The position numbers were made by a program, and so were the translations under genes. A DNA stretch of 64,000 bases from Piromyces finnis finn. Taxonomy: Eukaryota > Fungi > Neocallimastigomycota. The notes under the pieces were generated by a model that was not told where the DNA came from, ran no database searches, and saw nothing but the letters and a program-made list of their open reading frames with translations. Location of the stretch: assembly GCA_002104945.1 (NCBI GenBank), contig MCFH01000061.1, forward strand, positions 250,759 to 314,758. The letters run 5' to 3'. Below, one piece after another: positions 1,032-44,211 of this stretch (the first letter of the stretch is position 1; each line of letters opens with the position of its first letter).

Positions 1032-1904
1032 GCTTTTAAATAAACAATATTTTTCTACATATCGATGAAATCAAAATTATTATCATAATTAATAATTAGT
1101 TATGAATTTGAACTAATTTGCAAATAAAAAATACAATAAGCTATAAAAATAGAAATTCAAGTTTATTAATTTTAATATTACAGTCAAAGAAATAAGTAAA
1201 AGTTAATAATATTAAAATATATATTAAATATATTAAATATTCCATTTTTTTTTGCTAACTTTTATAACATTATTATTCATTATTATATATATTAATAATA
1301 TTTTTATTTATTATGCTTCAACATAATATCAATATTTTTTTTATTATTTTTTTTTCTTTTTTTTTTTTTTACAGAATTTTACAATTTGTAAAAATAAAAG
1401 TTTTATTTTTTAACTTGTTCATAATAATTCTGTTTTTTTTTTTTTTATATAATAATTTAATAATTAAAATTTATTGGATAAAATCAAATTTTAATTAAAA
1501 AACTTAACCATGCATTCTAATTATTATTTTTAATTTTTTTTTAATTTACTAAACCTTACCTTTCATTCTTTTTTTCTTTTCTTTTTTTTTTTTTTACTTA
1601 ATATTATTTATTTAGTTATTTAGTTATTTTAAAAACTTTTAAAAAAGTATAAATAAACAAAAAAAATTCATTTCTTTTTTTTTTTTTATTCATCAATATA
1701 TTTTATATATTTTATTAATTATAAAAATTTATTTAAAATATTTTTCAATGATTTATCAATCTATTTTAAATTTATATTCAGTAAATTTAATCTACATTAT
1801 ATATCATTTTCATTATTTAATAAATTAATACGTTTTTTTTTTAAATTTGAGTTTAATATTATAAAACAAAATTAAAAAGTTATTTAAATTTTAAAAGGAA
1901 AAAA

Positions 1905-4331
1905 ATGACCCTTAATAAGTGTTTTGCTATTGATTACAGTGGTTCAACTTGGAATGATACATTTTATCACTCAAATGTTCTTTCTATTTTAAAGGCAAAA
2001 TTTAATGAAGGAGATGAAATTATTATTTGGGATACTGAATCAAAGTTTGTTACATGGGATGAATATATGGAAATCAACAGTACAAAGGATGGTAATGGAG
2101 GAACCGATCCAAAGTGTTTATTTAATTCAGTGTTTTCAAAACATCAAAAGGCTACTTATTCTGAATTTATTTTAATTTCCGATGGAATGGTTTATGACCG
2201 TGATGTGGAACAACTTGATGAAACTATCAAAAGACATGCTGACGATTTCAAATGTAATTATACAGAAGTTTATTTATTAGGAAACGGTGCTAATCTAAGT
2301 ATTGCTTGTCCTTTCACCCGTTTTAATGCAAGTAGGACGATTGTTAAGAATTTAAATAGTGAAGACCAAATCATTGATGTTTCCGATGAAGATTTAAAAA
2401 CTATTGATCAAATTGACACCATCAATACAATGGAAGAGTTTGATTTAATGTTTCCATCTTTGGAAAAGGCATTTATTGCTAGATGCTTAGGTACAGATGG
2501 AGATAAGGAATTAAGAAGGTCAGTTTTATTAATGCAAAAGAGAATTAATTCTAATAACGCCAAAAAGACCGAGAATAAGAATGAAAGAATTAATACACTA
2601 GTTATGCAAGATAAGAATTATGAAGAAGCAAAGACAGAAGCTATAAAGTGTTTTACCTCTGTATTAAGTGGTGATTTCCAATCCAAGATAAATTCATTAA
2701 TTCGTATGAGTGATGGTGGATTAAAGCAAGTGTTCGATATTAACAAGTTACAAACATTTAGGGCATTTACTGCAAATACCACCCAGGTCAATGAAGTTGA
2801 AGATATTCAAGATTTAAATATAGAATCATCGGTGGGTAATTCTCAATGGGAATGTCCAATTTCCATTGATTATGAAACGGATCCAATGATTCTTATCACT
2901 GTTGATGAAAATGATGAAAATGAGGAACAAAAGCCAGTTCTTTTCGGATTTGACAAAAGGATGACAGAGTATATGCTTAATTGTCCATTAAATGCATTGT
3001 ATATTGATGAATTTGTTACCAAGTTCAAAGCATACATTGATCATTCAATTTCTTTAAAGAACTATCGTGCTTCCTTACAATCTTCAAATCCAATCGTAAA
3101 GTCACCATTCACTCGTAGAACCATTATTGGTGCCATTCCATTAGGAGAAAACGATGAACATGTCAAGTCTGCAAATTGGTCATTAATGAAGATTATTACA
3201 GGAGGAAAGCATTTAGGAGATATTCATTTATGGTTTTTCGTTTTATATATATTAATAAAAACAAATCAAATTCCTTACTTGAAGGATATTGAACCATTTA
3301 TTGAAGCTCAAGTCAAGTACCGTTTCTCTCATTTTACTACTTCGATTTCTTTAAGTGGTTTGTCCAATTTACCACAAACTAGAGTATTCTATCCAACAGC
3401 AGCTTGGACTTGTTTAATTTCTCCATTCTTGATTCCAAAGATTCCTTCAAATTTAAATTTACTCTATACTCACTTGAGTCACTACAAGGATTTATTACAA
3501 ATTTTAGCGTTGTATGCTATTGAATTACCAAACGAATTTCAGCCATTTGTTCATCGTCTTGAAATTTTAGCCCATCTTTTATCGTACTTTAAGAAGAATC
3601 CAAAATTATTAGACGTCTACAAGAATGGCCTTCAAAACGCTACACTTTTCATTAACGTTGACGAAAATTCACCAATGTCTTCAGGTGGTGTATGCGGTGA
3701 TTTATTTATTCCAATTGATGGTGAAATCAAGGATGAAAATAGAATGAGATGCGTTCAGAGTCTGTCTACTGTATGCTATAATGCAGTTCAAGACGGTAGA
3801 ATTAGTTTAGATGAATTAGCATGGCTTATTGATTTTGTTGATGTTCAAAAAAGTTTAACAGATATTAATATTTTGCCATTGATTCAAGGAAAGCCAAGTG
3901 GAAGTGATAATGCAACATCCGCAATTCATGAATTTTGGAAGGAATGGGATGCTAATATTGACAAGTTCAATGTCAAGATTAGTGAAAACACTTGTAGACC
4001 ATATTATTATGTCAAGGAAGGAGTTACATGGTTAGAAGAATTAAGTACTATTCTTGATACCACTCGTCCAATTTTATCGTTAGATAAGCATTTTGGTAAT
4101 TTTGTTGATACCTATGGTAGATATCCAAGTCGAAATGAATATATATTATATTTATATCGTAAAATATGTTTAGGTAGTAAAACTTCAACCACATTACCAA
4201 GAAATATTTTAAAGTTCACCGATCAAGTATTTGCACGTTTTAATCCTATTATGAACAAGTATACTCCTGAAACTTTTATTAGAATCTTTCAAGATAATGC
4301 ATCAATTAATACTAGGATTAATAATGAATAA
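1905..4331 (+). CDS. Intronless 808-aa protein with N-terminal vWA-like (MIDAS) domain and U-box-like CPIS / SPFTR motifs (copy 1)
   Basis: Long open ORF. DYSGS (DxSxS), GGT and ISDG match the MIDAS pattern; WECPISIDYETDPMILI and KSPFTRR resemble the two ends of a U-box. Near-identical paralog at 22366-24786. Confidence 0.8.
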   Translation: MTLNKCFAIDYSGSTWNDTFYHSNVLSILKAKFNEGDEIIIWDTESKFVTWDEYMEINSTKDGNGGTDPKCLFNSVFSKHQKATYSEFILISDGMVYDRDVEQLDETIKRHADDFKCNYTEVYLLGNGANLSIACPFTRFNASRTIVKNLNSEDQIIDVSDEDLKTIDQIDTINTMEEFDLMFPSLEKAFIARCLGTDGDKELRRSVLLMQKRINSNNAKKTENKNERINTLVMQDKNYEEAKTEAIKCFTSVLSGDFQSKINSLIRMSDGGLKQVFDINKLQTFRAFTANTTQVNEVEDIQDLNIESSVGNSQWECPISIDYETDPMILITVDENDENEEQKPVLFGFDKRMTEYMLNCPLNALYIDEFVTKFKAYIDHSISLKNYRASLQSSNPIVKSPFTRRTIIGAIPLGENDEHVKSANWSLMKIITGGKHLGDIHLWFFVLYILIKTNQIPYLKDIEPFIEAQVKYRFSHFTTSISLSGLSNLPQTRVFYPTAAWTCLISPFLIPKIPSNLNLLYTHLSHYKDLLQILALYAIELPNEFQPFVHRLEILAHLLSYFKKNPKLLDVYKNGLQNATLFINVDENSPMSSGGVCGDLFIPIDGEIKDENRMRCVQSLSTVCYNAVQDGRISLDELAWLIDFVDVQKSLTDINILPLIQGKPSGSDNATSAIHEFWKEWDANIDKFNVKISENTCRPYYYVKEGVTWLEELSTILDTTRPILSLDKHFGNFVDTYGRYPSRNEYILYLYRKICLGSKTSTTLPRNILKFTDQVFARFNPIMNKYTPETFIRIFQDNASINTRINNE

Positions 4332-5258
4332 AAAAGAAAAAAAGTTGATTATATAAAATTTTTTTTTGAATTACCATTATAATGTATATTTTATTTTTAT
4401 TCCTTTCCTATAAAATATTCATAACAAATGAATATTTAATGTAATTGTTATTCATTATTTAAGTTTAACTTTATATAGATAAAATTTAATATATATTATA
4501 TTATTTTTATTATTATAATATTATTATTATATAGCTATTATAAATATTATAAATATACTTTTTTTGGATATATATATATATTTTTATTTTTATTCATTAT
4601 TTTTTTGTTTAGTTTTCAATATAAACTCTTTATATATTAGTAAAATTTAATAAATATTAGTATATATTAAAAACCAATTTTATATAAGCAGAGATCTTTA
4701 TATTTACTTTTGTGTTCTTTTTATGTATTTAACTCAACATCTCTATTAATTAATATAGTATGATTTATAATATATAAAATATTATGTCAATTGAAAATAA
4801 TAAAAAAAAAAAGAGTATCTAGTAATTTTTTAATCTATATAATAATTAATTATTTTTTCTTAAAAAAAAAAAGAAATTATTTATCTTCCAACACTTATTA
4901 TTATATAATATATTAATTCTTATTTCTTCGTACAATAAACAAATATTATTAAGGAAAAATAACGAATATAAATTTTTTATTTTATTTAATAAATTTTTAA
5001 ATATTAATAATTTTTTATTGATATTGATAAGAGTATTGTGCTGATATAAATATAATCAATAATAAAATATATTTTATGTATTTTATAATAACATAAATAA
5101 TATTATATTGAAATAAATATTATATATATTATAAATTGTTATAAATATTGTGTGTATATAAATATAAATGCGTTGATAATAAAATTTAAAGAGTTGAAAT
5201 AAAATGTTCATTTCAACAAAGATATACAAAGAGATTGTATCATTTTAATAAAATAGTA

Positions 5259-7696
5259 TTATATATCTGGGCAAAATCCATATTTATTTTGGCATTTGTT
5301 AATGGAACAGTAAGCCGAGGTTGTTCCACAGTAGCCTTTGTTACTACAGCATTTGTTATCGGAACAGGTTCCATAACTTTCTCCACATTTGCAACTACCA
5401 TAGTTAGATTGACATCCACTAGATGATGCACAATAAGCTTTGGTTCTTCCACAATATCCTTTCTTACTACAGCATTGTCCGTCTGAACATAATCCATAGT
5501 TTTCACCACATTTACAACTACCATAGTTAGATTGACATCCGTTGGAAGAATAACAGTAAGATTTAGTTTTTCCACAATATCCCTTTTTACTACAACATAA
5601 ACCATCTGAACACATTCCATAATCCTCACCACATTTACAAGTACCGAATTCAGATTGACATCCATTAGAAGCAGCACAATGAGCATCGGATACTCCACAA
5701 TAACCATGTTTACTGCAACATTTACCAGAAGGACAACTACCAAAGACACCTCCACATCTTCTTGCAGCTTCACATTTATTACCATAGTTATATTCTGAAT
5801 GACTATATAATATGTTTTTATATAAGCAAAAAAACATTATGATGTGTTATAAAATAAATATAAATATATTAATATTTTACTTTTTATTAAAATAATCTAC
5901 ACAATAAATAGATAAATAAATAAATCAATAATTACTTTATTTTTTGAATTTCAGCTGGAAGAGTATCAATACAATTTTTATCAATTCCTCTATAAATTTA
6001 AAAATATTATATTTAATAATTAGTATATTTCATTCAAATGAAATAATAATGGCAGTCAGTTAAATTTTAATATTTACAAATATATAAGATTTTCTAAATT
6101 TCCAATTTCAGCTGGGACTTCCTTTATTCTGTTATCTGAAAAATCTCTAAACACATTATTTAATTATATAAAATAAATAAAGAGATATATTTATTAAATT
6201 AAAAATTTAATAAAAAATCATATACATATGATAACAAAGAATCTATATATATACATACAAAAATATGAGATTTTTAAGATTAGCAATTTCTGATGGAATT
6301 GTGGATAATACATTACTTTGTAAATATCTATTAACATAGTTTTAATAATTAAAGAATTAATTTTTTTGATCTTATATGTATATAGTACAATATATTTTTT
6401 TACTTACAATTGTTCAAGATTGGTAATATTTCCAATGGAATTTGGAATTTCAGTTATTTCATTATTATATAAAAGTCTATAATAAAAATTTAAATTTATA
6501 AATGTGTTAAAAAAAGCTATTTTATATATTGCTATTGGTAAGTTTATCGTTTTACTAACAAATATAAAAGATTCTTAAGATCACCAATAGTTGAAGCAAT
6601 TGTAGATATTTTATTATTAAATAAATATCTATATTTTATAAATATATATTTATATTTTAAATTTGTGAATAAATTTATATATATTATATTATATCATATA
6701 ATGCTATTATTATTATAAATTTTATTCTTATTAAATTACAATTTATTAAGACTTTGAAGATTTTTAATTTCAGGTGGAATGGAGGTTACTACATTGTTAG
6801 ATAAATCTCTATAAATTGTATAAAATACATTATTTTATTATTTTATTTATATAGATGAATTTTCAATATTATTTGTTAATATTTAATATATTATATTTAC
6901 AAAAAGTTAAGATTTTTAAGTTGGCAGATGTCTGATGAAATGGTAGTTAATGTATTATTATTTAATTGTCTATAGTAATTATTTTAATTAATGTTAGTAT
7001 TATTATAAATATGTAAATAAATATATAAAATATTAATTATATTATATATTATATATATAATATCTTAATTTCGTACAATGTTAAAAGATGTTCAAGATTT
7101 CCAATTTCTGGAGAAATTTTAGTTAACATATTCCTTGATACATCTCTATAAATATATAATTTTATTATCATTAATAACTATTAATTTTAATAATCTATAT
7201 TTAATATTTATATTATTAATTATTTGTTAATTTACAATGTTTCAAGGTTCTTAAGTTTTTCAATATCTGAAGGAATTTCAGTTAATTTATTATCATATAA
7301 ATTTCTATTAATATTAAATATTAATAGAGATAAATAGAAAATTAAAAAATTATTATACTTATCATAAATATGATTTAAATAAATATATAATTTTATACGA
7401 ACAAGAAAGTTAAAGAGGTTATTTTATATACAAATTTTGGTATTTCTGTTAAATCTTGATAATTTATATACCTTTTTTTAATTAAATAAAATAAAATAAT
7501 TTATATTAATGGTTTTTTTTATATTTATAATTTTATATTATTTAATATATGATATATACAATTTTGAAGCATTTTTATATTTATTGTCTTCACAACTAGT
7601 AACAAGATTTCCTAATTTTTGTTTAACTTCTTTACATGAATAACCAAAAGTTATTGAAATTAATAACCCCAAAATCAAAATAGATTTTAATATCAT
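5259..7696 (-). CDS. Secreted LRR + 4x hevein/CBM18 protein, copy A (12 exons, 451 aa predicted)
   Basis: Manual GT-AG model. Exon 1 7696-7560 (MILKSILILGLLISITFGYSC..., signal + cap). Nine 69-nt LRR exons: 7471-7403, 7304-7236, 7145-7077, 6969-6901, 6808-6740, 6628-6560, 6476-6408, 6327-6259, 6146-6078 (e.g. NLYDNKLTEIPSDIEKLKNLETL). 54-nt cap exon 5989-5936. Last exon 5802-5259 with four CG..GxCxxxxCCSxxGYCG repeats. All introns phase 2, frame open throughout. Confidence 0.9.
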
Positions 7697-8353
7697 TTTA
7701 TTTTTGTCCTGTATTTTTTGCTTTATTTTAAAAAGTTAATACAATTATTATAGATTTTAAAATAAAAAATTGTAAATTTTCTTTGTTTTATTTCTTTAGA
7801 TAAAAAGTATAATTGAAACTTGGTCTAATTGAAAAATGAAGGAAAAGTGAAAAGTCATTCTATTTATACTTTTTATTGAAAATAAACTTTTTATTACTTA
7901 ATTAAAATAAATTAGAATTAAATAACATGATATCTGAAACTATTTAAATATAATATTTAATTATAATATTTAATTATAATATTTAATTACCATTATTACT
8001 ACTACTATTATAATTATTATTATTATTATTATTATTATTATTTACACTTGTTCATATATTAACAAATATATTAATGAAAATATTTAAATTGAAATAATTA
8101 AAAGAATTTCTTTATCAAATAGAATTTCTTCAAAATTAAAGAAATCTCTTAATTTATCTTTCTGAAATCTTATTGGTTCTAGTCTTCAAAGAATGACGTT
8201 TATCTTTTATTGATTTTCTATGAAGAGTTTATTTGTATTATATTAAAATATATATATTATTTTTTATTATGTATAATCCAATTATAAATTAATTTAATTT
8301 TATATATAGAAAAAAGATAAAGTCTTGATAATTTTTTTTTCTATTACTCATCC

Positions 8354-8358
<5 letters not shown>

Positions 8359-8404
<46 letters not shown>

Positions 8405-8406
8405 TA

Positions 8407-8443
<37 letters not shown>

Positions 8444-8445
8444 TA

Positions 8446-8500
<55 letters not shown>

Positions 8501-8502
8501 TA

Positions 8503-8536
<34 letters not shown>

Positions 8537-8538
8537 TA

Positions 8539-8584
<46 letters not shown>

Positions 8585-8586
8585 TA

Positions 8587-8631
<45 letters not shown>

Positions 8632-8654
8632 GTTGTTGTTGTTGTTGTTGTTGT
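8359..8654. repeat. (ATT)n microsatellite with periodic TCTAAT interruptions, ending in (GTT)n
   Basis: Directly visible; explains the poly-I and poly-Y ORFs in the track. Confidence 0.95.
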
Positions 8655-9361
8655 TTCAAAAGACAATATTATATTTATAAAAAAGTATTATTTCTATTTG
8701 CTTAAATAATCACAAGTTTAGTGATGAACAAATTTAAACTTTTATAACGTTTTTACTATTTATAATGAAAAAATAAGTTATTTAATAAGGCTTTAAAGAA
8801 AAAAGAATTGAATGTAACTTTTTTCAAAATTTAAATTAATAGAAAAAAAAAAAGATGGCTTGAACTTTTTTATTTAATCATTTTTAATATTAAACTGTTA
8901 TCCCATTAATATTCATTTGATCTTATTTGAATTATTATTAATTAAATTACTATTTAAATAATAATTCATATTTAAAGAATTAGAATTATCATCTTTTTTT
9001 AACATCATTACTATGACTATTACTATTTTTATCTTTTTAACATTATTATTATTACTATAATATTTATAATTTTTATATTGCTAAGTAAATGAACTATAAA
9101 TGTAAATAACCTATTATTTGATAACACGAGAAAAATAATACATATATAATTTAAAAACTTTATATATTCTTTATTGAAATGTATATAAATACTGAATACA
9201 TGAAATCAATGTCTAATACAATTTTAATTATAATGATAAAGATGTTTGAAATAAATAAATGTTATTGTTATTAATAAAATTTAAAGAGTTGAAATAAAAT
9301 GTTCATTTCAACAAAGATATACAAAGATACAAAGAGATTGTATCATTTTAATAAAATAGTA

Positions 9362-12255
9362 TTATTTATCTGGGCAAAATCCATATTTATTTTGGCATTT
9401 GTTAATGGAACAGTAAGCTGAGGTTGTTCCACAGTAGCCTTTGTTACTACAGCATTTGTTATCGGAACAGGTTCCATAACTTTCTCCACATTTGCAACTA
9501 CCATAGTTAGATTGACATCCACTAGATGATGCACAATAAGCTTTGGTTCTTCCACAATATCCTTTCTTACTACAGCATTGTCCGTCTGAACATAATCCAT
9601 AGTTTTCACCACATTTGCAACTACCATAGTTAGATTGACATCCGTTGGAAGAATAACAGTAAGATTTAGTTTTTCCACAATATCCCTTTTTACTACAACA
9701 TAAACCATCTGAACACATTCCATAATCCTCACCACATTTACAAGTACCGAATTCAGATTGACATCCATTAGAAGCAGCACAATGAGCATCGGATACTCCA
9801 CAATAACCATGTTTACTGCAACATTTACCAGAAGGACAACTACCAAAGACACCTCCACATCTTCTTGCAGCTTCACATTTATTACCATAGTTATATTCTG
9901 AATGGCTATATAATATGTTTTTATATAAGCAAAAAAACATTATGATGTGTTATAAAATAAATATAAATATATTAATATTTTACTTTTTATTAAAATAATC
10001 TACACAATAAATAGATAAATAAATAAATCGATAATTACTTTATTTTTTGAATTTCAGCTGGAAGAGTATCAATACAATTTTTATCAATTCCTCTATATTT
10101 TAATAAATTAATACAAAAACAAAAATAATATTAGTACTTAAATAAGTCATTTTGTTGTTTAATTAAATACGATAATTTACAGATATTTAAGATTTCTTAA
10201 ATTTCCAATTTCAGCTGGAACTTCCTTTATTCTATTATCTGAAAAATCTCTAAATGAATGATGTTATAAGTTAATATATAAAACCAAATTTATTTATTTA
10301 AAATATTCTAATATTTGATAAAATGTATTTACAAGTATTCAAGTTTATTAAGGTTTTTGATTTTAGATGGAATGACAGATATATAATTTTCATTAAAACG
10401 TCTGTATAATTTGTATAATTTTATATATTTTAAAAAAGATGATAAATACAATAGGTTAAAATAATATATTTATTTATTATTATACTATTAAAAACTATTT
10501 TAAATATACATACAAATCTTTAATATTTTCAAGATTTCCTATTTCGGATGGAATTGTCGTTAATTCATTATTATGGGAATACCTATTAAAAGATTCCGTA
10601 ATTCAATATTTAATAAAATTATCTTAATCATATATTGTTTCATATTAAATTATACATACAATTTTGTAAGATTTTTAAGATTTCCAATTTCTTGAGGAAT
10701 TGATGTTAATTTATTATTTTCTATATATCTATTAATATGTAATAATTAAATAGGTTTAATAATATAATATATAATATAAATTTATATTAAAACTTTATTT
10801 ACAATTCTGTAAGATTAACAAGATTTCCAATTTTTGCTGGGATAGATGTTAATTCATTTTGTGATATATTTCTATAACGTTTTTTAAAAATATTAATTTT
10901 ATTATTATTTTTTTATAAAATATTTCTATTTTATACTATATAATTAAATTATTTAGTATTTTTATATTTCATTTTACAATTCTTTAAAATTTGAAAATAT
11001 ATCAATATCAAATGGAATTTGTTTTAATTTATTATCATTTAATGTTCTATGAGTGATATGATTAAAGTATAATGTAAAGCATTAATAAATTTACTTTTCT
11101 TAATAACACATATTTATTATTATTCTATTATATAATACTTAAAATTGTTTTAATATACATACAAATCTTTAAGCTTTTTAAGATTTCCAATTTCTGATGG
11201 AATTGTTGTTAACTTATTATTATTAAAATATCTTTATTAAATATATTGTTAATAACATTAAATTTTTATATAAAAGTATACATTCAAATATTTTATATAC
11301 ATTTACATTCAATATACTTACAAATATTCGAGATTAACAAGATTTCCAATAGATTTTGGAACTTCAATTAATTCATTATAATATAAAACTCTAATATAAA
11401 AATTCAATTCATATTAAATAAATTATTTTATGATATTGATTTTTCTTTTTTTTTCTTTTACATTTTGACTTACAAGCAATAAAGATTTTTAAGATCACCA
11501 ATAGTTGAAGGTATTTTTGATAATTGATTATTATTTAAAATTCTAATTAATATATATTTTTTAAAAATGTAAACTTATCAATAAAATAATTATATTTAAT
11601 AATTATTTTTTCTTCCATAAATAAAAAAATTGTGAATAATTTTTTACAATAGCAAAAGATTTTTAAGTTTTCCAATTTCTGGAGAAATCGTAGTTAACAT
11701 ATTATTTGGTAAATATCTATAAACAAATTTATAAAAAAAAGTATTAAAAATAGTGGTTTTAATAATTTTTATCATATAATATTATTAATAAAATTCTACT
11801 TACAGTTGTTCTAGATTTACAAGCTTTCCAATATCTGAAGGAATTTCAGTTATTTTATTATTATATAAATTTCTATTTATTCATATATTAAATAAATAAA
11901 AAATTAAAATAAAATTTTAAAAGTAACAATTTTTACATTTTTATGATTAATATATTAATACATACAAATATCTTAAGGAAGTTATTTCAAAAATAAATTC
12001 TGGAATTTCAGTTATGCCTTTAGAATGAATATGCCTTTTTATTGAAATTAAATATTATGTAAATAATAAGTATATTAATGATTATTTCATTTACATTTAT
12101 TAAAATTACAAAATTTACAATTCGTAAGGAACATTTTCTTCTTTTTCACCGCAGTGAGTAAGAATATCTCCTAATTTTTGTTTAACTTCTTTACATGAAT
12201 AACCAAAAGTTATTGAAATTAATAACCCCAAAATCAAAATAGATTTTAATATCAT
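9362..12255 (-). CDS. Secreted LRR + 4x hevein/CBM18 protein, copy B (15 exons, 520 aa predicted)
   Basis: Exon 1 12255-12119. Twelve 69-nt LRR exons: 12034-11966, 11872-11804, 11716-11648, 11542-11474, 11390-11322, 11231-11163, 11046-10978, 10871-10803, 10728-10660, 10582-10514, 10401-10333, 10249-10181. Cap exon 10092-10039; CBM18 exon 9905-9362. All GT-AG, phase 2, no stops. Confidence 0.9.
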
Positions 12256-12519
12256 TTTATTTTTGTCTTGTATTTTTTGCTTTATTTTAAAAGTTAATAC
12301 AATTATTATAGATTTTAAAATAAAAAATTGTAAATTTTCTTTGTTCTATTTCTTTAGATAAAAAGTATAATTGAAACTTGGTCTAATTGAAAAATGAAGG
12401 AAAAGTGAAAAGTCATTCTATTTATACTTTTTATTGAAAATAAACTTTTTATTACTTAAAATAAATTAGAATTAAATAACATGATATCTAAAACTATTTA
12501 AATATAATATTTAATTATC

Positions 12520-21753: not shown

Positions 21754-22365
21754 TTTTTTTAATATTTAATTTTTTGTTTTTTGTTTTTGTTTTTGTTTTT
21801 GTTTTTGTTTTTGTTTTTGTTTTTAAAAAACCAAAAAATTTCGCTTTTTTTTCTTTTATTTATACTTTTTTTTTTATAAAATTCTTAATGATTTTATTGG
21901 TTAAAAATTTAATTAAATTTTGTTATGAAAATTATTTATTTTAACTGCCTTATACCATATTAAATGAAACAGCACAAAGTGATATTTTAAATAAAATATA
22001 TAAATATATAAAATCATTTTAAATATTCTATTCAATATTATTTGATAAAATAATAATATTTTATAACTTTTAATAATATTTTTTAAGTCCTCAAAAGGTT
22101 AAAATTGAACTATGGAAAAGTTAAGGTTATTTTTTTTATTTATTTTTTATTTATTTATTAAAGTTTAAAATAATTATTAAATAAATATAAAAAAATATTT
22201 TCGAATAATAATTAAAAAAAAAGAATATATAAAATAAAAAATTATTATTTTTCAAGGTATTTTTTATATCAAATATAAAATTATATATATATATATACTT
22301 TATGTATATTATACATATATAATTAAAAATATTTGAAATATTATTAATAATTTTTTTTTTTTTTT

Positions 22366-24786
22366 TTACTTTTCATTATTAATCCTAGTATTAATTGATG
22401 CATTATCCTGAAAGATTCTAATAAAAGTTTCAAGAGTATACTTGTTCATAATAGGATTAAAACGTGCAAATACTTGATCGGTGAACTTTAAAATATTTCT
22501 TGGTAATGTGGTTGAAGTTTTACTACCTAAACATATTTTACGATATAAATATAATATATATTCATTTCGACTTGGATATCTACCATAGGTATCAACAAAA
22601 TTACCAAAATGCTTATCTAACGATAAAATTGGACGAGTGGTATCAAGAATAGTACTTAATTCTTCTAACCATGTAACTCCTTCCTTGACATAATAATATG
22701 GTCTACAAGTGTTTTCACTAATCTTGACATTGAACTTGTCAATATTAGCATCCCATTCCTTCCAAAAATCATGAATTGCGGATGTTGCATTATCACTTCC
22801 ACTTGGCTTTCCTTGAATCAGCGGCATAATATTGATATCGGTTAAACTTTTTTGAACATCAACGAAATCAATAAGCCATGCTAATTCATCTAAACTAATT
22901 CTACCATCTTGAACTGCATTATAGCATACAGTAGACAGACTCTGAACGCATCTCATTCTATTTTCATCCTTGATTTCACCATCAATTGGAATAAATAAAT
23001 CACCGCATACACCACCTGAAGACATTGGTGAATTTTCGTCAACGTTAATGAAAAGTGTAGCGTTTTGAAGGCCATTCTTGTAGACGTCTAATAATTTTGG
23101 ATTCTTCTTAAAGTACGATAAAAGATGTGCTAAAATTTCAAGACGATGAACAAATGGCTGAAATTCGTTTGGTAATTCAATAGCATACAACGCTAAAATT
23201 TGTAATAAATCCTTGTAGTGACTCAAGTGAGTATAGAGTAAATTTAAATTTGAAGGAATCTTTGGAATCAAGAATGGAGAAATTAAACAAGTCCAAGCTG
23301 CTGTTGGATAAAATACTCTTGCTTGTGGTAAATTGGATAAACCACTCAAAGAAATGGAAGTAGTAAAATGAGAGAAACGATACTTGACTTGAGCTTCAAT
23401 AAATGGTTCAATATCCTTCAAGTAAGGAATTTGATTTGTCTTTATTAATCTATATAAAACGAAAAACCATAAATGAATATCTCCTAAATGCTTTCCTCCC
23501 GTAATAATCTTCATTAATGACCAATTTGCTGACTTGACATGTTCATCATTTTCACCCAATGGAATGGCACCAATAATGGTTCTACGAGTGAACGGTGACT
23601 TTACGATTGGATTTGAAGATTGTAATGAAGCACGATAATTCTTTAATGAAATTGAATGATCAATGTATGCCTTGAATTTGGTAACAAATTCATCAACGTA
23701 CAACGCATTTAATGGACAATTAAGCATGTATTCTGTCATCTTTTTGTCAAATCCAAATAGAACTGGTCTTTGTTCCTCATTGTTATCAACGGTGATAAGA
23801 ATCATTGGATCTGTTTCGTAATCGATGGAAATTGGACATTCCCATTGAGAAGTACCCACGGATGATTCTATATTTAAATTTTGAATGTCTTCAACTTCAG
23901 TGACCTCGGTAGTATTTGCAGTGAATGCCCTAAATGTTTGTAGCTTGTTAATATTGAATACTTGTTTTAATCCTCCATCACTCATACGAATTAACGAATT
24001 TATCTTGGATTGGAAATCACTACTTAATACCGAGGTAAAACACTTTATAACTTCTGTCTTTGCTTCTTCATAATTCTTATCTTGCATAACTAATGTATCA
24101 ATTCTTTCATTCTTATTTTCTTCCTTTTTGGCATTATTAGAATTAATTCTCTTTTGCATTAATAAAACTGACCTTCTTAATTCCTTATCTCCATCTGTAC
24201 CTAAATATCTGGCAATAAATGCCTTTTCCAAAGATGGATACTTTAAATCAAATTCTTCCATGGTATTGATGGAATCAATTTGATCAATGGTCTTTAAATC
24301 TTCATCAGAAACAGCAATGATTTGGTCCTCACTATTTAAATTCTTAACAATTGTTTTACTTGCGTTAAAACGGGTGAAAGGACAAGCAATACTTAGATTA
24401 GCATTATTTCCTAATAAATAAACTTCTGTATAATTACATTTGAAATCGTCAGCATGTCTTTTGATAGTTTCATCAAGTAAATCCACCTCATGATTACAAA
24501 CCATTCCATCGGAAATTAAAATAAATTCAGAATAAGTAGCCTTTTGATGTTTTGAAAACACTGAATTAAATAAGCACTTTGGATCGGTTCCTCCATTACC
24601 ATCCTTTGTACTGTTGATTTCCATATATTCATCCCATGTAACAAACTTTGATTCAGTATCCCAAATAATAATTTCATCTCCTTCATTAAATTTTGCCTTT
24701 AAAATAGAAAGAACATTTGAGTGATAAAATGTATCATTCCCAGTTGAACCACTGTAATCAATAGCAAAACACTTATTAAGGGTCAT
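22366..24786 (-). CDS. Intronless 806-aa vWA (MIDAS)/U-box-like protein (copy 2, inverted relative to copy 1)
   Basis: Aligns end to end with 1905-4331; about 450 bp of 5' flank is also shared (24787-25225 vs ~1460-1904). Confidence 0.8.
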   Translation of the reverse strand: MTLNKCFAIDYSGSTGNDTFYHSNVLSILKAKFNEGDEIIIWDTESKFVTWDEYMEINSTKDGNGGTDPKCLFNSVFSKHQKATYSEFILISDGMVCNHEVDLLDETIKRHADDFKCNYTEVYLLGNNANLSIACPFTRFNASKTIVKNLNSEDQIIAVSDEDLKTIDQIDSINTMEEFDLKYPSLEKAFIARYLGTDGDKELRRSVLLMQKRINSNNAKKEENKNERIDTLVMQDKNYEEAKTEVIKCFTSVLSSDFQSKINSLIRMSDGGLKQVFNINKLQTFRAFTANTTEVTEVEDIQNLNIESSVGTSQWECPISIDYETDPMILITVDNNEEQRPVLFGFDKKMTEYMLNCPLNALYVDEFVTKFKAYIDHSISLKNYRASLQSSNPIVKSPFTRRTIIGAIPLGENDEHVKSANWSLMKIITGGKHLGDIHLWFFVLYRLIKTNQIPYLKDIEPFIEAQVKYRFSHFTTSISLSGLSNLPQARVFYPTAAWTCLISPFLIPKIPSNLNLLYTHLSHYKDLLQILALYAIELPNEFQPFVHRLEILAHLLSYFKKNPKLLDVYKNGLQNATLFINVDENSPMSSGGVCGDLFIPIDGEIKDENRMRCVQSLSTVCYNAVQDGRISLDELAWLIDFVDVQKSLTDINIMPLIQGKPSGSDNATSAIHDFWKEWDANIDKFNVKISENTCRPYYYVKEGVTWLEELSTILDTTRPILSLDKHFGNFVDTYGRYPSRNEYILYLYRKICLGSKTSTTLPRNILKFTDQVFARFNPIMNKYTLETFIRIFQDNASINTRINNEK

Positions 24787-27700
24787 TTTTTTCCTTTTAA
24801 AATTTAAATAACTTTTTAATTTTGTTTTATAATATTAAACTCAAATTTAAAAAAAAAACGTATTAATTTATTAAATAATGAAAATGATATATAATGTAGA
24901 TTAAATTTACTGAATATAAATTTAAAATAGATTGATAAATCATTGAAAAATATTTTAAATAAATTTTTATAATTAATAAAATATATAAAATATATTGATG
25001 AATAAAAAAAAAAAAAGAAATGAATTTTTTTTGTTTATTTATACTTTTTTAAAAGTTTTTAAAATAACTAAATAACTAAATAAATAATATTAAGTAAAAA
25101 AAAAAAAAAAGAAAAGAAAAAAAGAATGAAAGGTAAGGTTTAGTAATTAAAAAAAAAATTAAAAATAATAATTAGAATGCATGGTTAAGTTTTTTAATTA
25201 AAATTTGATTTTATCCAATAAATTTTAATTATTGTTACTGTAATGAACAAGTTAAAAAATATATAAATACAGAATTTTGTAATTATTAAGTTAATTATAA
25301 AATATTTTAAATACTTAAATACTTTTTCACATAAATTTGTTAAATGGATATAACCTAAAATAACATAAACATATATTAAATATAAATGTAATTTATACAT
25401 GTTTTAAAGATCTATATTTTTTATAATCAATTAACTATGATATAAAAATAATAGGTGACTTTGAACCTATTATATGTTAGTAAATTTTTCTTAATATTAA
25501 ATTTATATAGTTTTTATTATTATATTAATTATTTCTAATATAGTAAAAGAATGTAATATAATGTATTATTAATGTAAGAACATATAATGTAAAATAATAA
25601 TATAAATGTATAATCCATATAATTCATGCCTTATAATTGAAAAATTAGTTATTAAGTAAGCCTCATTAGAATAAATAGACTAGGAAATAGTTATTATTAA
25701 AGAGGCTTCTTGTTTTTAGTAAAGTTTTAATAATTAACAACGACAGACTTAACGTTTTAATATTTAGATAGAATAGAAATATTGAAACGTAATAAATAAA
25801 GTTATTAATAAAACACGTATTATTAAAGCTAAATTCTTTTCTAAATAAAATTAACCCGTATCAACTAAAATATTATATGATATATGTTTCTTTTATGTTA
25901 TAGTAATTTAATATTGGTTTATCTATTAGATGAAAATGTCTTATTATTAAAAAAAAAGGTTTTCATTTTGTAAATTGTTGGCACTCCTAAAAAAATATTT
26001 ATATTTAATGTACATGATTAATTTTCTTTTTTTCTAATCCTTTTAATTTTCATATTAATTATCGGTAGTAATAATTATTGTTGGTAATAATTATAATTGT
26101 TAGTAGTAATCATTATTGTCTGTAGCAATTGTTGTTAGTAATAATAAATGTAGTTTGTAGTAGCAAATATTGGTAGTATCTGTAATCATAATGATAATGT
26201 CATTGAATAATTGTAATTGTTGTAATAATAAATCTTTCTTTAAATAAAAAAATGGAGCATAAATTTTTTAATTATTAAATATAAAAAAAGTTTTTTTTCA
26301 AAAAATTTAAACAATTCAATAGATGAATAATAAAAAAACTAACCAAACCATGGCTATATGTATGACTCTATGGTTTTATGATTATTAATAAAAAAGAATA
26401 ATTAATGATACTACTACTATTGTTATTATCATTATTATTATTAAAATCTCTTTATTATGTTTATTATTACGTTTAAATTATTGTATATAATGATTAATAA
26501 AAACCTAATTGGTAATAGTAATATAAAAATAATAAGTTTATCAAAATATCGAAAGAGATTATATTTTTAATATCCATTTGAAATTGCAATAAAAAACAAC
26601 TTCTTATACCATATATCTATTAAAAAAAAGGGATATATATATTCAAACTTTGTTTAAATTTTTAAAATATTAAAATAGGTCAATAACTTGTAACAATGAA
26701 TGAATATTTAAACTATGCATTCAATATTAAAAAAATAAAAAAGATATACCAAAGTTTTAATGTACACAATTTTAAAAAACACAAATTTATTTTTAGTAAT
26801 GATGATATAGGGTAAAAAAAATTTTAATTCGTAAAAAATGACAAAAATGTAAAAAATAAAAAAAAGTATATATTACATACTATTTTATATTTTTATATAG
26901 AATTAGTATAATAATGAAGGCATAACCATTCCGAAATAAAAATTATAGCATTAAAAAAGAATCTTGAAAAAAAGAATACTGTTTTTTTTTTAAATATTTT
27001 CATAAAAAAATGAAATTCATCCTTTTAATTCTTATTTCCAGAGTTTATTTTAAAACATTTCAAATGCCAAAAAGTAAAAAAAAAAACATAGACATATTTA
27101 ATATATATTACCCAACTGAAAAAAAAAAGATATTAAATTATATCACATCCATTAAATATAATAAAGTAAAGGATCTATGATTATAAAAATGGTTTTAGGT
27201 CAAGAAAGGAGAATTTATCAATAAATGACTACAAATTTTAAATATTTTTTTTTGATTTATTAACGCAAAAAGTTAATAACAATATAGAGTTGTTGTTGTA
27301 GGAATGTAGAGGTAATTAATTAACATTTTCTTATGATGATTTATGATTTTGACTTATTATATCTTAGATATCTTTTAGAACACTATATCTCAAAGATGTT
27401 GACTTATTTTTTAAAAAAAAATATATATACATCTGTACATAATAGTTAAAATATTATTTCTTGTATTATTTAACATTACATTGAAAGAATTTTTTTTTAT
27501 CCTATAAAATTTCAACGCCGATTCGAAATAGATATATATGATATATTAAAAAATAATATATCTATATGTTATATATCATATATTATAACATATACAATTT
27601 AAATAGTAAATTGTAGTTCATCAATTTACAATGTAATTAACAATGTAATGTATAATGTATTATATTTAAAGAACATTCCACAAAATTTTTAAACAAATTT

Positions 27701-36436: not shown

Positions 36437-38895
36437 TTATTTATCTGGGCAAAATCCATATTTATTTTGGCATTTGTTAATGGAACAGTAAGCTGAGGTT
36501 GTTCCACAGTAGCCTTTATTACTACAGCATTTGTTATCAGAGCAGGTTCCATAACTTTCTCCACATTTGCAACTACCATAGTTAGATTGACATCCACTAG
36601 ATGATGCACAATAAGCTTTGGTTCTTCCACAATATCCTTTCTTACTACAGCATTGTCCATCTGAACATAATCCATAGTTTTCACCACATTTACAACTACC
36701 ATAGTTAGATTGACATCCGTTGGAAGAATAACAGTAAGATTTAGTTTTTCCACAATATCCCTTTTTACTACAACATAAACCATCTGAACACATTCCATAA
36801 TCCTCACCACATTTACAAGTACCGAATTCAGATTGACATCCATTAGAAGCAGCACAATGAGCATCGGATACACCACAATAACCATATTTACTACAACATT
36901 TACCGGATGGACAACTTCCAAAAATGCCGCCACATCTTCCTGCAGCCTCACATTTATTACCATAATTATATTCTGAATGACTATTTAAAATGTTTTTAAA
37001 AGCAAAAGTATATTAGGATTAGTTATTAAATAAATATAAATTTAAATATATATTATTTTTAAATTAGTCTACGCTATAAATATATAAAAAATAGGCAATT
37101 ACTTTATTTTTTGAATTTCAACTGGAAGAGAATCAATACAATTTTCATTAATTCCTCTATATTTTTTTGATTTAAAAAAATTATATTTTATAAATATAAT
37201 ATTTTATAATTAGTTCAAATGAAATAATAATAACAGTCAATTAAATTTCAACATTTACAAATATAAAAGATTTTCTAAATTTCCAATTTCAGCTGGGACT
37301 TCCTTTATTCTATTATCAGAAAAATCTCTAAGCACATATAATTATGAAAAATAAAAATATATATTTATTATATTAAAAATTTACTAAAGAAATATATATA
37401 TAAAAGAAAAATAAATATATATATATATACATACAAAACTATAATATTTTTAAGATTAACAATTTCTGATGGAATTATGGATAAGCCATTACTATTTAAA
37501 TACCTATCAGCATAGTTTTAATAATTATAGAATTAATAAAAATATGTTAAATTTTTAAAGTTTATATGCGTATACTACAATATATTTTATACTTACAAAT
37601 GTTCAAGATTGGTAATATTTCCAATGAAATTTGGAATTTCAGTTATTTCATTATTATATAAAAGTCTATAATAAAAATATAAATTTATAAAAGTTAAAAA
37701 AAAACTATTTTATATATTGTTAAGTGTATTATTTTACTAACAAGTATAAAAGATTTTTAAGATCACCAATAGTTGAAGCAATTGTAGATATTTTATTATT
37801 AAATAAATATCTATATTTTATTAATAAACATTTATATATTTATATTTTAAATTTGTGAATAAATTTATATATATTATATTATAATATGCTATTATTATTA
37901 AATTACAATTTATTAAGACTTTGAAGATTTTTAATTTCAGGTGGAATAGAAGTTACTAAATTGTTAGATAAATCTCTATATAGTGTATAAAATATATATG
38001 TTTATTATTAGTATAATACATTATTTCCTTTTTCAATAAAGAAGAAATTTCAATACTATTTTTAATATTTAACATATATATTTACAAAAAGTTAAGATTT
38101 TCAAGTTGACAAATGTCTGATGAAACGGTAGTTAATGTATTATTATTTAATTGTCTATAGTTATTATTTATATTTTATTCATGTTAATATTATTATAAAT
38201 ATGTAAATAAATATAGAAAATATAAATTATATTTATATATTATATATATATTATTCCCATAATCTTAATTTCGTACAATGTTAAGAGATTTTTAAGATTT
38301 TTAATTTCTGGAGAAATTTTAGTTAACATATTCCTTGATACATCTCTATAAATATTTAAATATAGTAATTTTTATAAATATTTATTTTAGCAATTTATAT
38401 TATATAATATTAATAATAAAAGTCTACTTACAAAGTTTCAAGATTCTTAAGTTTTTCAATATCTGAAGGAATTTCAGTTAATTTATTATCATATAAATTA
38501 CTATTTATATTAAATATTAATATAAATATATATAATAAAATTTAAAAAATTATTATATTTATCATATATATAACTCAAATACATATATATCTTTATACGA
38601 ACAGGAAAGTTAAAGAGGTTATTTCATATATGAATTTTGGTATTTCTGTTAATTCTTGATAATTTATATATCTTTTTTTCAATTAAATAAAATAAAATAA
38701 CTTTTATTAGTATTTTTTTATATTTACAACATAATATTTTTTAATATGACATATATACAATTTATAAACTTTTCCATATTTATTTTCATCACAACTAGTA
38801 ACAAGATTTCCTAAGCGTTGTTCAACTTCTTCACATGAATAACCAAAGGTTATTGAGATTAATAACCCCAAAATCAAAATAGATTTTAATATCAT
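36437..38895 (-). CDS. Secreted LRR + 4x hevein/CBM18 protein, copy C (12 exons, 451 aa predicted)
   Basis: Exon 1 38895-38759. Nine 69-nt LRR exons: 38671-38603, 38500-38432, 38345-38277, 38154-38086, 37975-37907, 37810-37742, 37665-37597, 37503-37435, 37327-37259. Cap exon 37156-37103; CBM18 exon 36980-36437. LRR order is collinear with copy A. Confidence 0.9.
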
Positions 38896-42306: not shown

Positions 42307-44211
42307 ATGCCATCTATGAAAAAAAATTTATATTGGTTAGCTTCTGCTTTCTTATTAAGCAGAAATGTTATTGCTAGTGATTGTTCCTATGTTGAAAGAG
42401 CTATAAATTATTTTGGGGATGAATTCAATAAAAATTACAATGTTACTGACTGTTGTCAATTTAATGGTGTGAGATGTGACGAAAATAAAAATGTTACTGG
42501 ACTGTAAACTATCAATAAATTTAAATATAATATATATATATAAAAATAAAAACACTTTTTATATAAAAAGTGTTGTATAAAAGAATTAAAAATAATAACG
42601 ATATTAAGAAAGGGAAAAAATTACTTATTTTTATTTTATATTATTATTTATATATATTAATATCCAATATTAATAATTATCATAGTAAATTAGTCCATAT
42701 TAAGGATGACACTGCTAATCCAGCTAAAATTTTTGAAAAAATTGGAAACTTGAAAGAATTAACTTATTTGTAAGTTTTTTTTTTTTTTTTTTTTAACATA
42801 ACACGAAATAAAATTATTATATTATTATAGTACAGATTATAAATTATTATAAAAGTATTAAGAAAGGTAGAATTTAATATAATAGTATAGAAGTATTATG
42901 AAAGTAGAGATTAATATAGTAAAAGTTATTATAGATTATTATAATAAATTATTATAGTAGTCAAAAACAAAAAAAAAAAAGTTATGATGATTGAGGAGGA
43001 GGAGAAAGAATGAATAATTAAATGATATAAATTATAAAAAATTTTTTTAAATATATTATATAGTAGTACAATTTCTTATTTATGTTTTTTTTTTCCTTTA
43101 TTTATTTAATAAAATAATCAGAGATTTATCCAATAATAATCTAAGTATTGATTTTCCAAAAGAAATTTGTGATTTAACCAAATTAACAAACTTAAATTTA
43201 AGTAATAACCGTTTATCCGGTGCTATTCCATACGATTGTAAAAATTTACAAAATCTTCAACAATTAAATTTAGCTGGTAATAAGGATTTAAATGGTTATG
43301 TTCCAATTTTAAGTAATCTTAAGGGTTGTGTCTATGAAAATACTAGTTTATGCTATCTTCCAAACGCAAATTGTAGAAATTCTAAAATGGCTTGTAATGC
43401 CGAACAAGTCAAAGCTACAAATGCTAATAATGGTTATCCTGATCCAGAAAGTTATCAATACGAAGGTATGGAAAAAAGTAGAGATATGAATGTTTATAAT
43501 GATGCTCAATACTACAATAGTTATGATACAAGTGCCTACGCTAACTACGATCCAAATTCATATGCCTATGATAATAGTTACGGTTATGATAATGGCTATG
43601 GTTACGGTTATGGCTATGACACCAGTTATTATAATAATGGATACAATTACGGTTATGATAATGGTTATTATGGTTCTAGTGGTTATGGTACTGGTGTTGG
43701 TTATGATTCTTATGATTATAGTGGTTACGGCTATGGTTCCGGTTCTGGTTACTCTAACTATTCTGGAGATGATTCTAGTATATTTACTTCACTTATAAGT
43801 ATCATTTTATATTGTGTCTTCTTTGTTATTGCTGTTATTGTTTGTTGTGCTTGCTGTTGTTGTGGTGTTTGTTCCTCTGGTAGTACCAATGAACCATCAT
43901 CTCAATCCAATAAACCTCACAAATATCCTACTATGACAACCACTGCTCCTCAAAAACCAGCTCAACATAAAATTGATATGGAACAAGATATCACTAATCA
44001 TACCATTCCATCTTACACTATGCCCAAACCAAATACTTATCCTCAATCAAACACTTATCCACAATCTAATATTTACCCACAACCACCAGCAGCTCCAGGT
44101 TATGGTTATGGAGGTGGATATGGTTATAATCGTGGTGTTGATGATGATGCTGAAAATGCCATAAGAGCTGTTGAAACTGTTGAAGCTAATATTAAAAAAA
44201 CAGAAGAATAA
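42307..44211 (+). CDS. Single-pass LRR receptor-like membrane protein with plant-type LRRs, Tyr/Gly-rich stalk and Cys-string after the TM helix (3 exons)
   Basis: Exon 1 42307-42503 (signal; cap DCCQFNGVRCDENKNVTGL), exon 2 42686-42769 (KLVHI...IGNLKELTYL), exon 3 43122-44211 (DLSNNNLSIDFPKEICDLTKLTNLNLSNNRLSGAIP...; in frame with ORF 43387). TM IFTSLISIILYCVFFVIAVIV, then CCACCCCGVC; Pro/Gln-rich tail. Confidence 0.85.

Follow-up and report, generated by a model that had tools for sequence, protein, structure and literature searches.

A 64,000-nucleotide stretch from the anaerobic gut fungus Piromyces finnis (contig MCFH01000061.1, positions 250,759 to 314,758; hereafter the window) carries three genes, referred to as A, B and C, in which leucine-rich repeats (LRRs) are encoded one per exon. 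The likely explanation is that these are germline paralogues for secreted LRR-CBM18 proteins, whose cassette exons arose by tandem duplication of exon plus intron, whose ends have been converted, and whose transcripts are constitutively spliced. Repeated tandem duplication of an exon-intron unit would have generated one LRR per 69-nt exon with introns at the same Leu position, and the symmetry of these exons, which begin and end in phase 2, would allow unequal crossing-over or slippage to add or remove whole repeats in frame. A and B, which are tandem neighbours, would then have undergone gene conversion that homogenised the promoter and signal-peptide part and the C-terminal part, with the LRR cores staying diverged. 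The predicted product is a Cys-capped solenoid of 23-residue LRRs with a tail of four CBM18 lectin modules, held on wall chitin, and its exons are presumed to be spliced constitutively by default.

Exon Structure of the Three Genes

The three genes share a common layout, consisting of a 137-nt exon 1, a series of 69-nt LRR exons, a 54-nt exon, and a 544-nt last exon. Scanning the window for AG-69 nt-GT segments that are open in the phase-2 frame yielded exactly 30 LRR exons, nine in A, twelve in B, and nine in C, all on the minus strand, and the gene models built around them close in frame at 451, 520, and 451 aa, respectively. The intron splits the codon for the Leu at position 4 of the LxxLxLxxN core between its second and third bases; this holds for 33/33 junctions flanking LRR exons (TTA 26, TTG 4, CTA 2, CTT 1), and the last junction of each gene is an Asn codon, also in phase 2. 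Without exception, the 36 introns are of the GT-AG type and in phase 2, with lengths of 74-133 nt, and their GC content is 11% versus 27.5% for the exons, in a window whose GC ranges from 11 to 32%. A first-pass annotation of this DNA had described 30 LRR exons of exactly 69 nt splitting the same Leu codon, an observation that holds in every countable respect (30/30 exons, 33/33 junctions); beyond that account, a truncated last repeat is encoded by the 54-nt phase-2 exon in A, B, and C.

Gene A (5259..7696, minus strand) has 12 stop-free exons in a phase-2 GT-AG model of 451 aa. Its exon 1 (7560..7696, 137 nt) encodes a signal peptide, called by eye from the hydrophobic N-terminus, and a two-Cys N-cap, and ends in phase 2 (TT|G). 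The nine LRR exons A1-A9 (6078..7471) are separated by introns of 80-112 nt, and are followed by the 54-nt exon (5936..5989), a truncated terminal LRR or C-cap in phase 2 at both ends, and by the last exon (5259..5802), which contains four CBM18 (Chitin_bind_1) modules (PF00187, E = 1.5e-26, 4 stretches). Gene B (9362..12255, minus strand; 15 exons, 520 aa) has the same ends and a rebuilt LRR core, with twelve LRR exons B1-B12 (10181..12034), among which B7-B11 (10333..11046) are without positional counterpart in A or C, a 54-nt exon in the gene model (10039..10092), and a CBM18 exon with four modules (9362..9905; PF00187, E = 1.2e-26). Gene C (36437..38895, minus strand; 12 exons, 451 aa) is a dispersed duplicate of A, with which it is collinear over 3.4 kb at ~86% identity; its nine LRR exons C1-C9 (37259..38671) pair one-to-one with A1-A9 at 85-97% nt identity and in identical order.

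Divergence and Probable Gene Conversion

The synonymous divergence (dS) between A and C is 0.12-0.16 throughout (about 0.13), and the ratio of nonsynonymous to synonymous divergence (omega) amounts to 0.35 in the LRR exons and to 0.06 in CBM18. This signature of purifying selection argues that these are real genes. The comparison of A with B is of a different kind, giving three blastn blocks that run from exon 1 to LRR3, from A6-8 paired with B4-6, and from A9/B12 to the gene end. Together with the exon identities, these blocks establish the equivalences B1-3 = A1-3, B4-6 = A6-8, and B12 = A9, from which it follows that B is without A4-A5 and carries B7-B11 in addition, confirming the earlier description of a gene that lacks two exons and has five extra ones between its A8-like and A9-like repeats.

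Sliding identity revealed two tracts on the minus strand with 98-100% identity between A and B. The 5′ tract (A 7630..7950, B about 12189-12509) covers promoter, 5′ untranslated region, and signal peptide, starting ~250 nt before the ATG and ending within the signal peptide; the 3′ tract (A 5270..5989, B 9373-10092) covers the 54-nt exon, the last intron, and the CBM18 exon, from the 54-nt exon acceptor to the stop. The core between them is only 53-83% identical, and the corresponding A-B dS values are 0.02 for the CBM18 exon versus 0.36 for the orthologous LRR exons. These near-identical ends are probably gene-conversion tracts of recent date, transferred in the direction A to B within an old tandem pair.

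The sharp edges of the tracts, where identity falls from 98-100% to 53-73% inside exon 1 and at the 54-nt exon acceptor, would also suit a history in which ectopic recombination or exon shuffling brought the LRR core of B, as one block, from a diverged paralogue into a tandem copy of A that had formed recently, and the tandem arrangement of the two genes is compatible with it. Such an import is nevertheless quite unlikely, given that the core of B is positionally orthologous to A and C at seven exons, as expected of an old tandem paralogue, and that no locus in the assembly (56,455,805 bases, 232 contigs) is closer to the B core than A and C themselves (68-70%). Moreover, the ends of B and C are as diverged as those of A and C (dS 0.16 in both cases), which is compatible with conversion from A to B. 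Because of these equal end divergences and the missing closer relative of the B core, an old tandem pair with recently converted ends is the simplest history.

Exon Phylogeny and Cassette Turnover

Maximum likelihood (ML) trees of the 30 exons, constructed from the exons alone and from exons plus flanking introns, contain seven positional groups, namely (A1,C1,B1), (A2,C2,B2), (A3,C3,B3), (A6,C6,B4), (A7,C7,B5), (A9,C9,B12), and (A8,C8), which are mostly highly supported with or without the introns. A4/C4 and A5/C5 form pairs specific to A and C, and B6-B11 have no firm placement, with B7 joining the A2/B2 group at 85/80 once introns are included. The exon phylogeny with flanking introns that the first-pass annotation had proposed as a check on duplication across positions is mostly one of positional groups, and the single cross-position grouping it had singled out, B6+B10, is unsupported. 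These two exons are indeed the most similar non-orthologous pair (83% nt, 16/22 aa) and sisters in the ML tree, but the support for that node is 42/0, and in approximately unbiased (AU) tests B6+B10, B6+B9+B10, and B6+A8+C8 are neither supported nor rejected (p = 0.23-0.36). Local alignment of the introns flanking B6 and B10 scored 45 versus 46 for the 99th percentile of shuffled sequence, and the comparison has little power, since orthologous A/B introns do not stand out by this measure either. If B6 and B10 are duplicates, they predate the A/B split because their dS is 0.53.

Evolution has evidently added and removed whole LRR exons in frame, as the two-exon and five-exon blocks of B illustrate, and to this extent the proposal of exon shuffling stands. 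Given the conserved exon order of A and C and the seven orthologous groups, cassette turnover among the three genes is slow relative to point substitution and mostly positional, unlike the 'highly dynamic' shuffling of brown algae.

Genome-Wide Arrays and Tandem Duplication of Cassettes

A search of the assembly with an exon profile of 22 columns produced 1241 first-look LRR candidates in two classes, short open frames corresponding to exonic repeats and long open reading frames (ORFs) of 460-2317 aa corresponding to intronless arrays of the same repeat. The loci that were fetched contain 68 further AG-69-GT phase-2 LRR exons, on contigs C177, C1, C68 (two genes), C184, C35, C171, and C157, including a series of 19 LRR exons upstream of a CBM18 exon on C35, together with at least 30 exons of 72 nt that encode a plant-like 24-residue repeat and likewise begin and end in phase 2 within a Leu codon (C177:242-246 kb, C196, C197, C184). 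The one-repeat-per-exon architecture is therefore genome-wide. Family members elsewhere have at least 6 to 19 LRR exons, and this range, like the difference between 9 and 12 exons in the window, would result from in-frame unequal crossing-over or slippage of symmetric exons. One array on C184 (176000-181500) interleaves 69-nt (23-residue) with 72-nt (24-residue, LxGxIP-type) LRR exons, all in phase 2.

The addition of cassettes by tandem duplication of exon plus intron is shown directly by a paralogous LRR-CBM18 gene (locus L009, positions 6105-6548, on contig C75; also on C177 and C93), in which a 148-nt unit composed of a 69-nt exon and a 79-nt intron is present in 2.5-2.8 copies with 86-92% identity. 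Two units have identical downstream introns, and the duplication is recent. Within this repeat, the units form a patchwork of each other's exon halves, and in the third copy the exon has been reduced to 60 nt, in phase 2.

Contigs C75, C93, and C177 represent the same paralogue locus at 99.2-99.8% identity and are probably allelic or secondary scaffolds; 'diploid gene pairs' have been reported for the Piromyces finnis genome (PMC8665504). Whole-exon differences among them that were suggested by a regular-expression scan proved to be small indels and were rejected. The collinearity of these contigs, without any whole-exon indel, also bears on the idea that the arrays are a substrate for somatic or nucleus-specific DNA rearrangement resembling that of variable lymphocyte receptors (VLRs), for which nothing beyond the modular layout speaks. 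The three germline genes are complete and open, and neither cassette banks nor pseudo-exons nor inverted LRR relic exons flank them within the window, where an nhmmer exon model matches only the 30 annotated exons; rearrangement of this kind is thus the least credible of the explanations considered.

Intronless Relatives and the Origin of the Introns

The same genome also contains intronless LRR-CBM18 genes, as do AT-rich metagenome contigs (L011, L014, L015, L016, L019), and one of the latter, L015, has the signal-peptide and N-cap style and the 23-residue period of A, B, and C. The 29 metagenome loci with a related CBM18 exon contain either intronless LRR-CBM18 genes or CBM18 proteins of other kinds, and no 69-nt exon array. 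A protein search with L015 returned mostly generic LRR proteins, with the products of A, B, and C not among the matches, and the best named eukaryotic relatives are 'L domain-like' proteins of Anaeromyces robustus, one of which combines LRR and CBM18. The genome also contains large intronless ORFs (up to 2317 aa) of the 23-residue LRR, at C163:116-126 kb, C57:761-772 kb, C195, C189, and others. Their best database matches include bacterial and archaeal ROCO-type LRR proteins, which raises the question of bacterial origin versus intron loss for these intronless arrays.

The occurrence of intronless arrays of the same 23-residue LRR in this genome and in relatives would fit an independent gain of introns at one and the same position in every repeat, for instance by introner-like elements inserting at the conserved Leu codon, in place of their duplication along with the exons. 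This is very improbable, as introns taken from different units resemble one another no more than shuffled sequences do, which argues against an introner family, and in the L009 paralogue exon and intron have been duplicated together, two downstream introns being identical. Co-duplication of exon and intron remains the preferred mechanism.

Constitutive or Regulated Splicing

Every LRR exon of A, B, and C is symmetric (2-2), and the skipping of any one of them would recreate a Leu (or Phe) codon. Regulated or combinatorial skipping could accordingly give isoforms with different LRR numbers and hence a recognition repertoire, as in the proposal for Ectocarpus ROCO genes. In brown algae, ROCO genes whose phase-2 exons are 72 bp long have been reported to give multiple LRR splice variants (PMC11378527), and in anaerobic fungi the CBM18 genes show a strong response to co-culture with methanogens (PMC8665504). 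Constitutively spliced LRR genes also have symmetric exons, however, and the splice sites of the three genes are canonical. The introns of A and C are 76-100% identical (mean ~88%) at a synonymous-site difference (pS) of 0.11-0.14, i.e., near the synonymous divergence, and no conserved intronic selector or docking blocks stand out, in a comparison of one close pair that has little power. Regulated skipping is unlikely on this evidence, and equally so is its extension, according to which Piromyces would, by skipping 69-nt LRR exons, present a variable set of chitin-anchored LRR proteins on its wall for the recognition of partners or competitors such as methanogens, other fungi, or plant surfaces.

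Protein Domains and Possible Function

Pfam and structure searches were conducted with single exons and with the 30 exon peptides combined as a profile. The last exons of A, B, and C contain four CBM18 modules per gene, scoring 92.8-94.4 bits against a Pfam gathering cut-off of 27.8. The 30 LRR exon peptides have the consensus xLxxNxLTxIPxxIGNLxNLxx, which together with the split Leu gives a period of 23. Single 22-aa exons produced only sub-threshold LRR_4 matches (E = 0.002-0.1), a weakness expected at 22 residues, and exon 1 of A had no match in the Pfam search. Against the PDB, the 30-exon profile matched 23-residue LRR proteins of Leptospira (E = 2e-60) and SHOC2 (E = 1e-13), and its repeat composition assigns A, B, and C to the 23-residue SHOC2/Leptospira-like class of the leucine-rich repeat superfamily.

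The differences between A and B are concentrated at the x positions of LxxLxLxxN, on the concave face (23/35 versus 31/119 elsewhere), and the younger A-C pair shows no excess at these positions. Judging from the domain content, the tail of four CBM18 modules most likely serves to bind the protein to chitin of the fungus's own wall, an arrangement that suggests that the concave face of the LRR is left free to bind a ligand. Anaerobic fungi possess expanded CBM18 families that are subject to regulation, and CBM18 genes are the family most induced under co-culture with methanogens (PMC8665504). Because of this induction, a role of A, B, and C in cell-cell or wall interactions is plausible.

Several points weigh against the overall account of constitutively spliced germline paralogues built by cassette duplication. 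The exon trees give no clear origin for B7-B11, the splice sites of the three genes are predictions, and constitutive splicing is a default assumption. Chitin binding, wall anchoring, and an LRR ligand are inferred from domain identity. Finally, the intronless LRR-CBM18 genes allow either direction of change, the expansion of an intron-bearing unit or the loss of introns by retroposition.

Comparison with Known Systems

The closest counterparts in gene design are the LRR-ROCO genes of the brown algae Ectocarpus and Saccharina (PMC3341825; PMC11378527), which likewise have one LRR per exon, introns that are all in phase 2, repeat numbers that vary among paralogues, and variation on the concave face. 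The two systems differ in exon length (72 nt versus 69 nt), in the placement of the intron, since the brown-algal exon ends after NxLx whereas the present introns split the Leu at position 4 of LxxLxLxxN, and in domain context, a ROC-COR GTPase in the algae versus signal peptide, LRR, and CBM18 without GTPase here. Furthermore, the algal system has non-coding or inverted relic LRR exons (PMC3341825), in contrast to the window, and algal exon content differs between recent duplicates, whereas the recent paralogues A and C are without exon change. In the ectodomain of the vertebrate receptors for luteinizing, follicle-stimulating, and thyroid-stimulating hormone (LH/FSH/TSH), LRR exons with all-phase-2 introns have been read as the product of duplicating a prototype LRR exon (as cited in PMC11378527); these are G protein-coupled receptor ectodomains of animals with variable exon sizes, and their homology to A, B, and C is limited to the LRR fold. 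The three genes are thus a fungal, independently positioned instance of a design known from brown-algal ROCO genes and gonadotropin receptors. The literature search found no paper describing a one-repeat-per-exon LRR-CBM18 architecture in Neocallimastigomycota.

Within the same genome, the 72-nt and mixed 69/72 arrays agree with A, B, and C in phase and split Leu, but the 72-nt arrays encode a 24-residue LxGxIP repeat with other C-terminal modules (membrane anchors); the present genes constitute a small subfamily with 23-residue repeats and four CBM18 modules. The closest repeat class for the 30-exon profile comprises the LIC10831/LIC11098-type proteins of Leptospira interrogans and SHOC2-type proteins (PDB 4u06, 4u08, 7t7a), which are bacterial or cytosolic and without CBM18, the bacterial genes being intronless. 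Dscam-like cassette splicing uses conserved intronic docking and selector sequences; the A-C introns are at about the neutral level of divergence, in a comparison of one pair with little power. Receptors of the VLR type combine an incomplete germline gene with banks of donor cassettes, in contrast to three complete genes without extra cassettes.

Plant LRR-extensins (LRX) have an extracellular LRR domain that a C-terminal module anchors to the cell wall. By analogy, A, B, and C may be seen as a similar arrangement in which the extensin anchor is replaced by a chitin lectin. The lectin-like CBM18 proteins of chytrids and anaerobic fungi are a further point of comparison.

Other Features of the Window

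A fourth LRR gene (42307-44211, plus strand) is not a strict one-repeat-per-exon array. It encodes a signal peptide, an N-cap with a plant-like 'CCxFxGVxCD' appearance, a small number of LRRs, of which two or three lie side by side in the last exon, a stretch rich in Tyr and Gly, and a transmembrane segment rich in Cys. Between A and B lies an (ATT/TTA)n microsatellite (8325-8655) of ~92 units, with a CTAATT interruption every 40-60 nt and (TTG)8 at its end. The window further contains a 2.9-kb inverted duplication (1459-4361, plus strand, and 22336-25233, inverted) of 95.8% identity, which carries a long intronless ORF at ~32% GC versus ~15% in its surroundings.

Significance

Fungi are usually described as being without extracellular LRR receptor-type proteins (Soanes and Talbot 2010, as cited in PMC13618815). 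The anaerobic gut fungus studied here has many LRR genes for secreted or surface proteins, organised as in-frame exon cassettes, one subfamily of which is fused to chitin lectin modules. No new principle is involved, and the three genes sit in a public annotated genome. The family offers a clean natural system for the growth and shrinkage of repeat arrays via duplication of exon plus intron, and A and B provide an example in which gene conversion would keep the ends constant while the binding cores diverge. If it were true, regulated skipping of LRR exons would be the fungal equivalent of the receptor diversity through splicing that has been proposed for brown algae. The members of the family are candidates for wall-anchored recognition proteins in a symbiont that is poorly understood.

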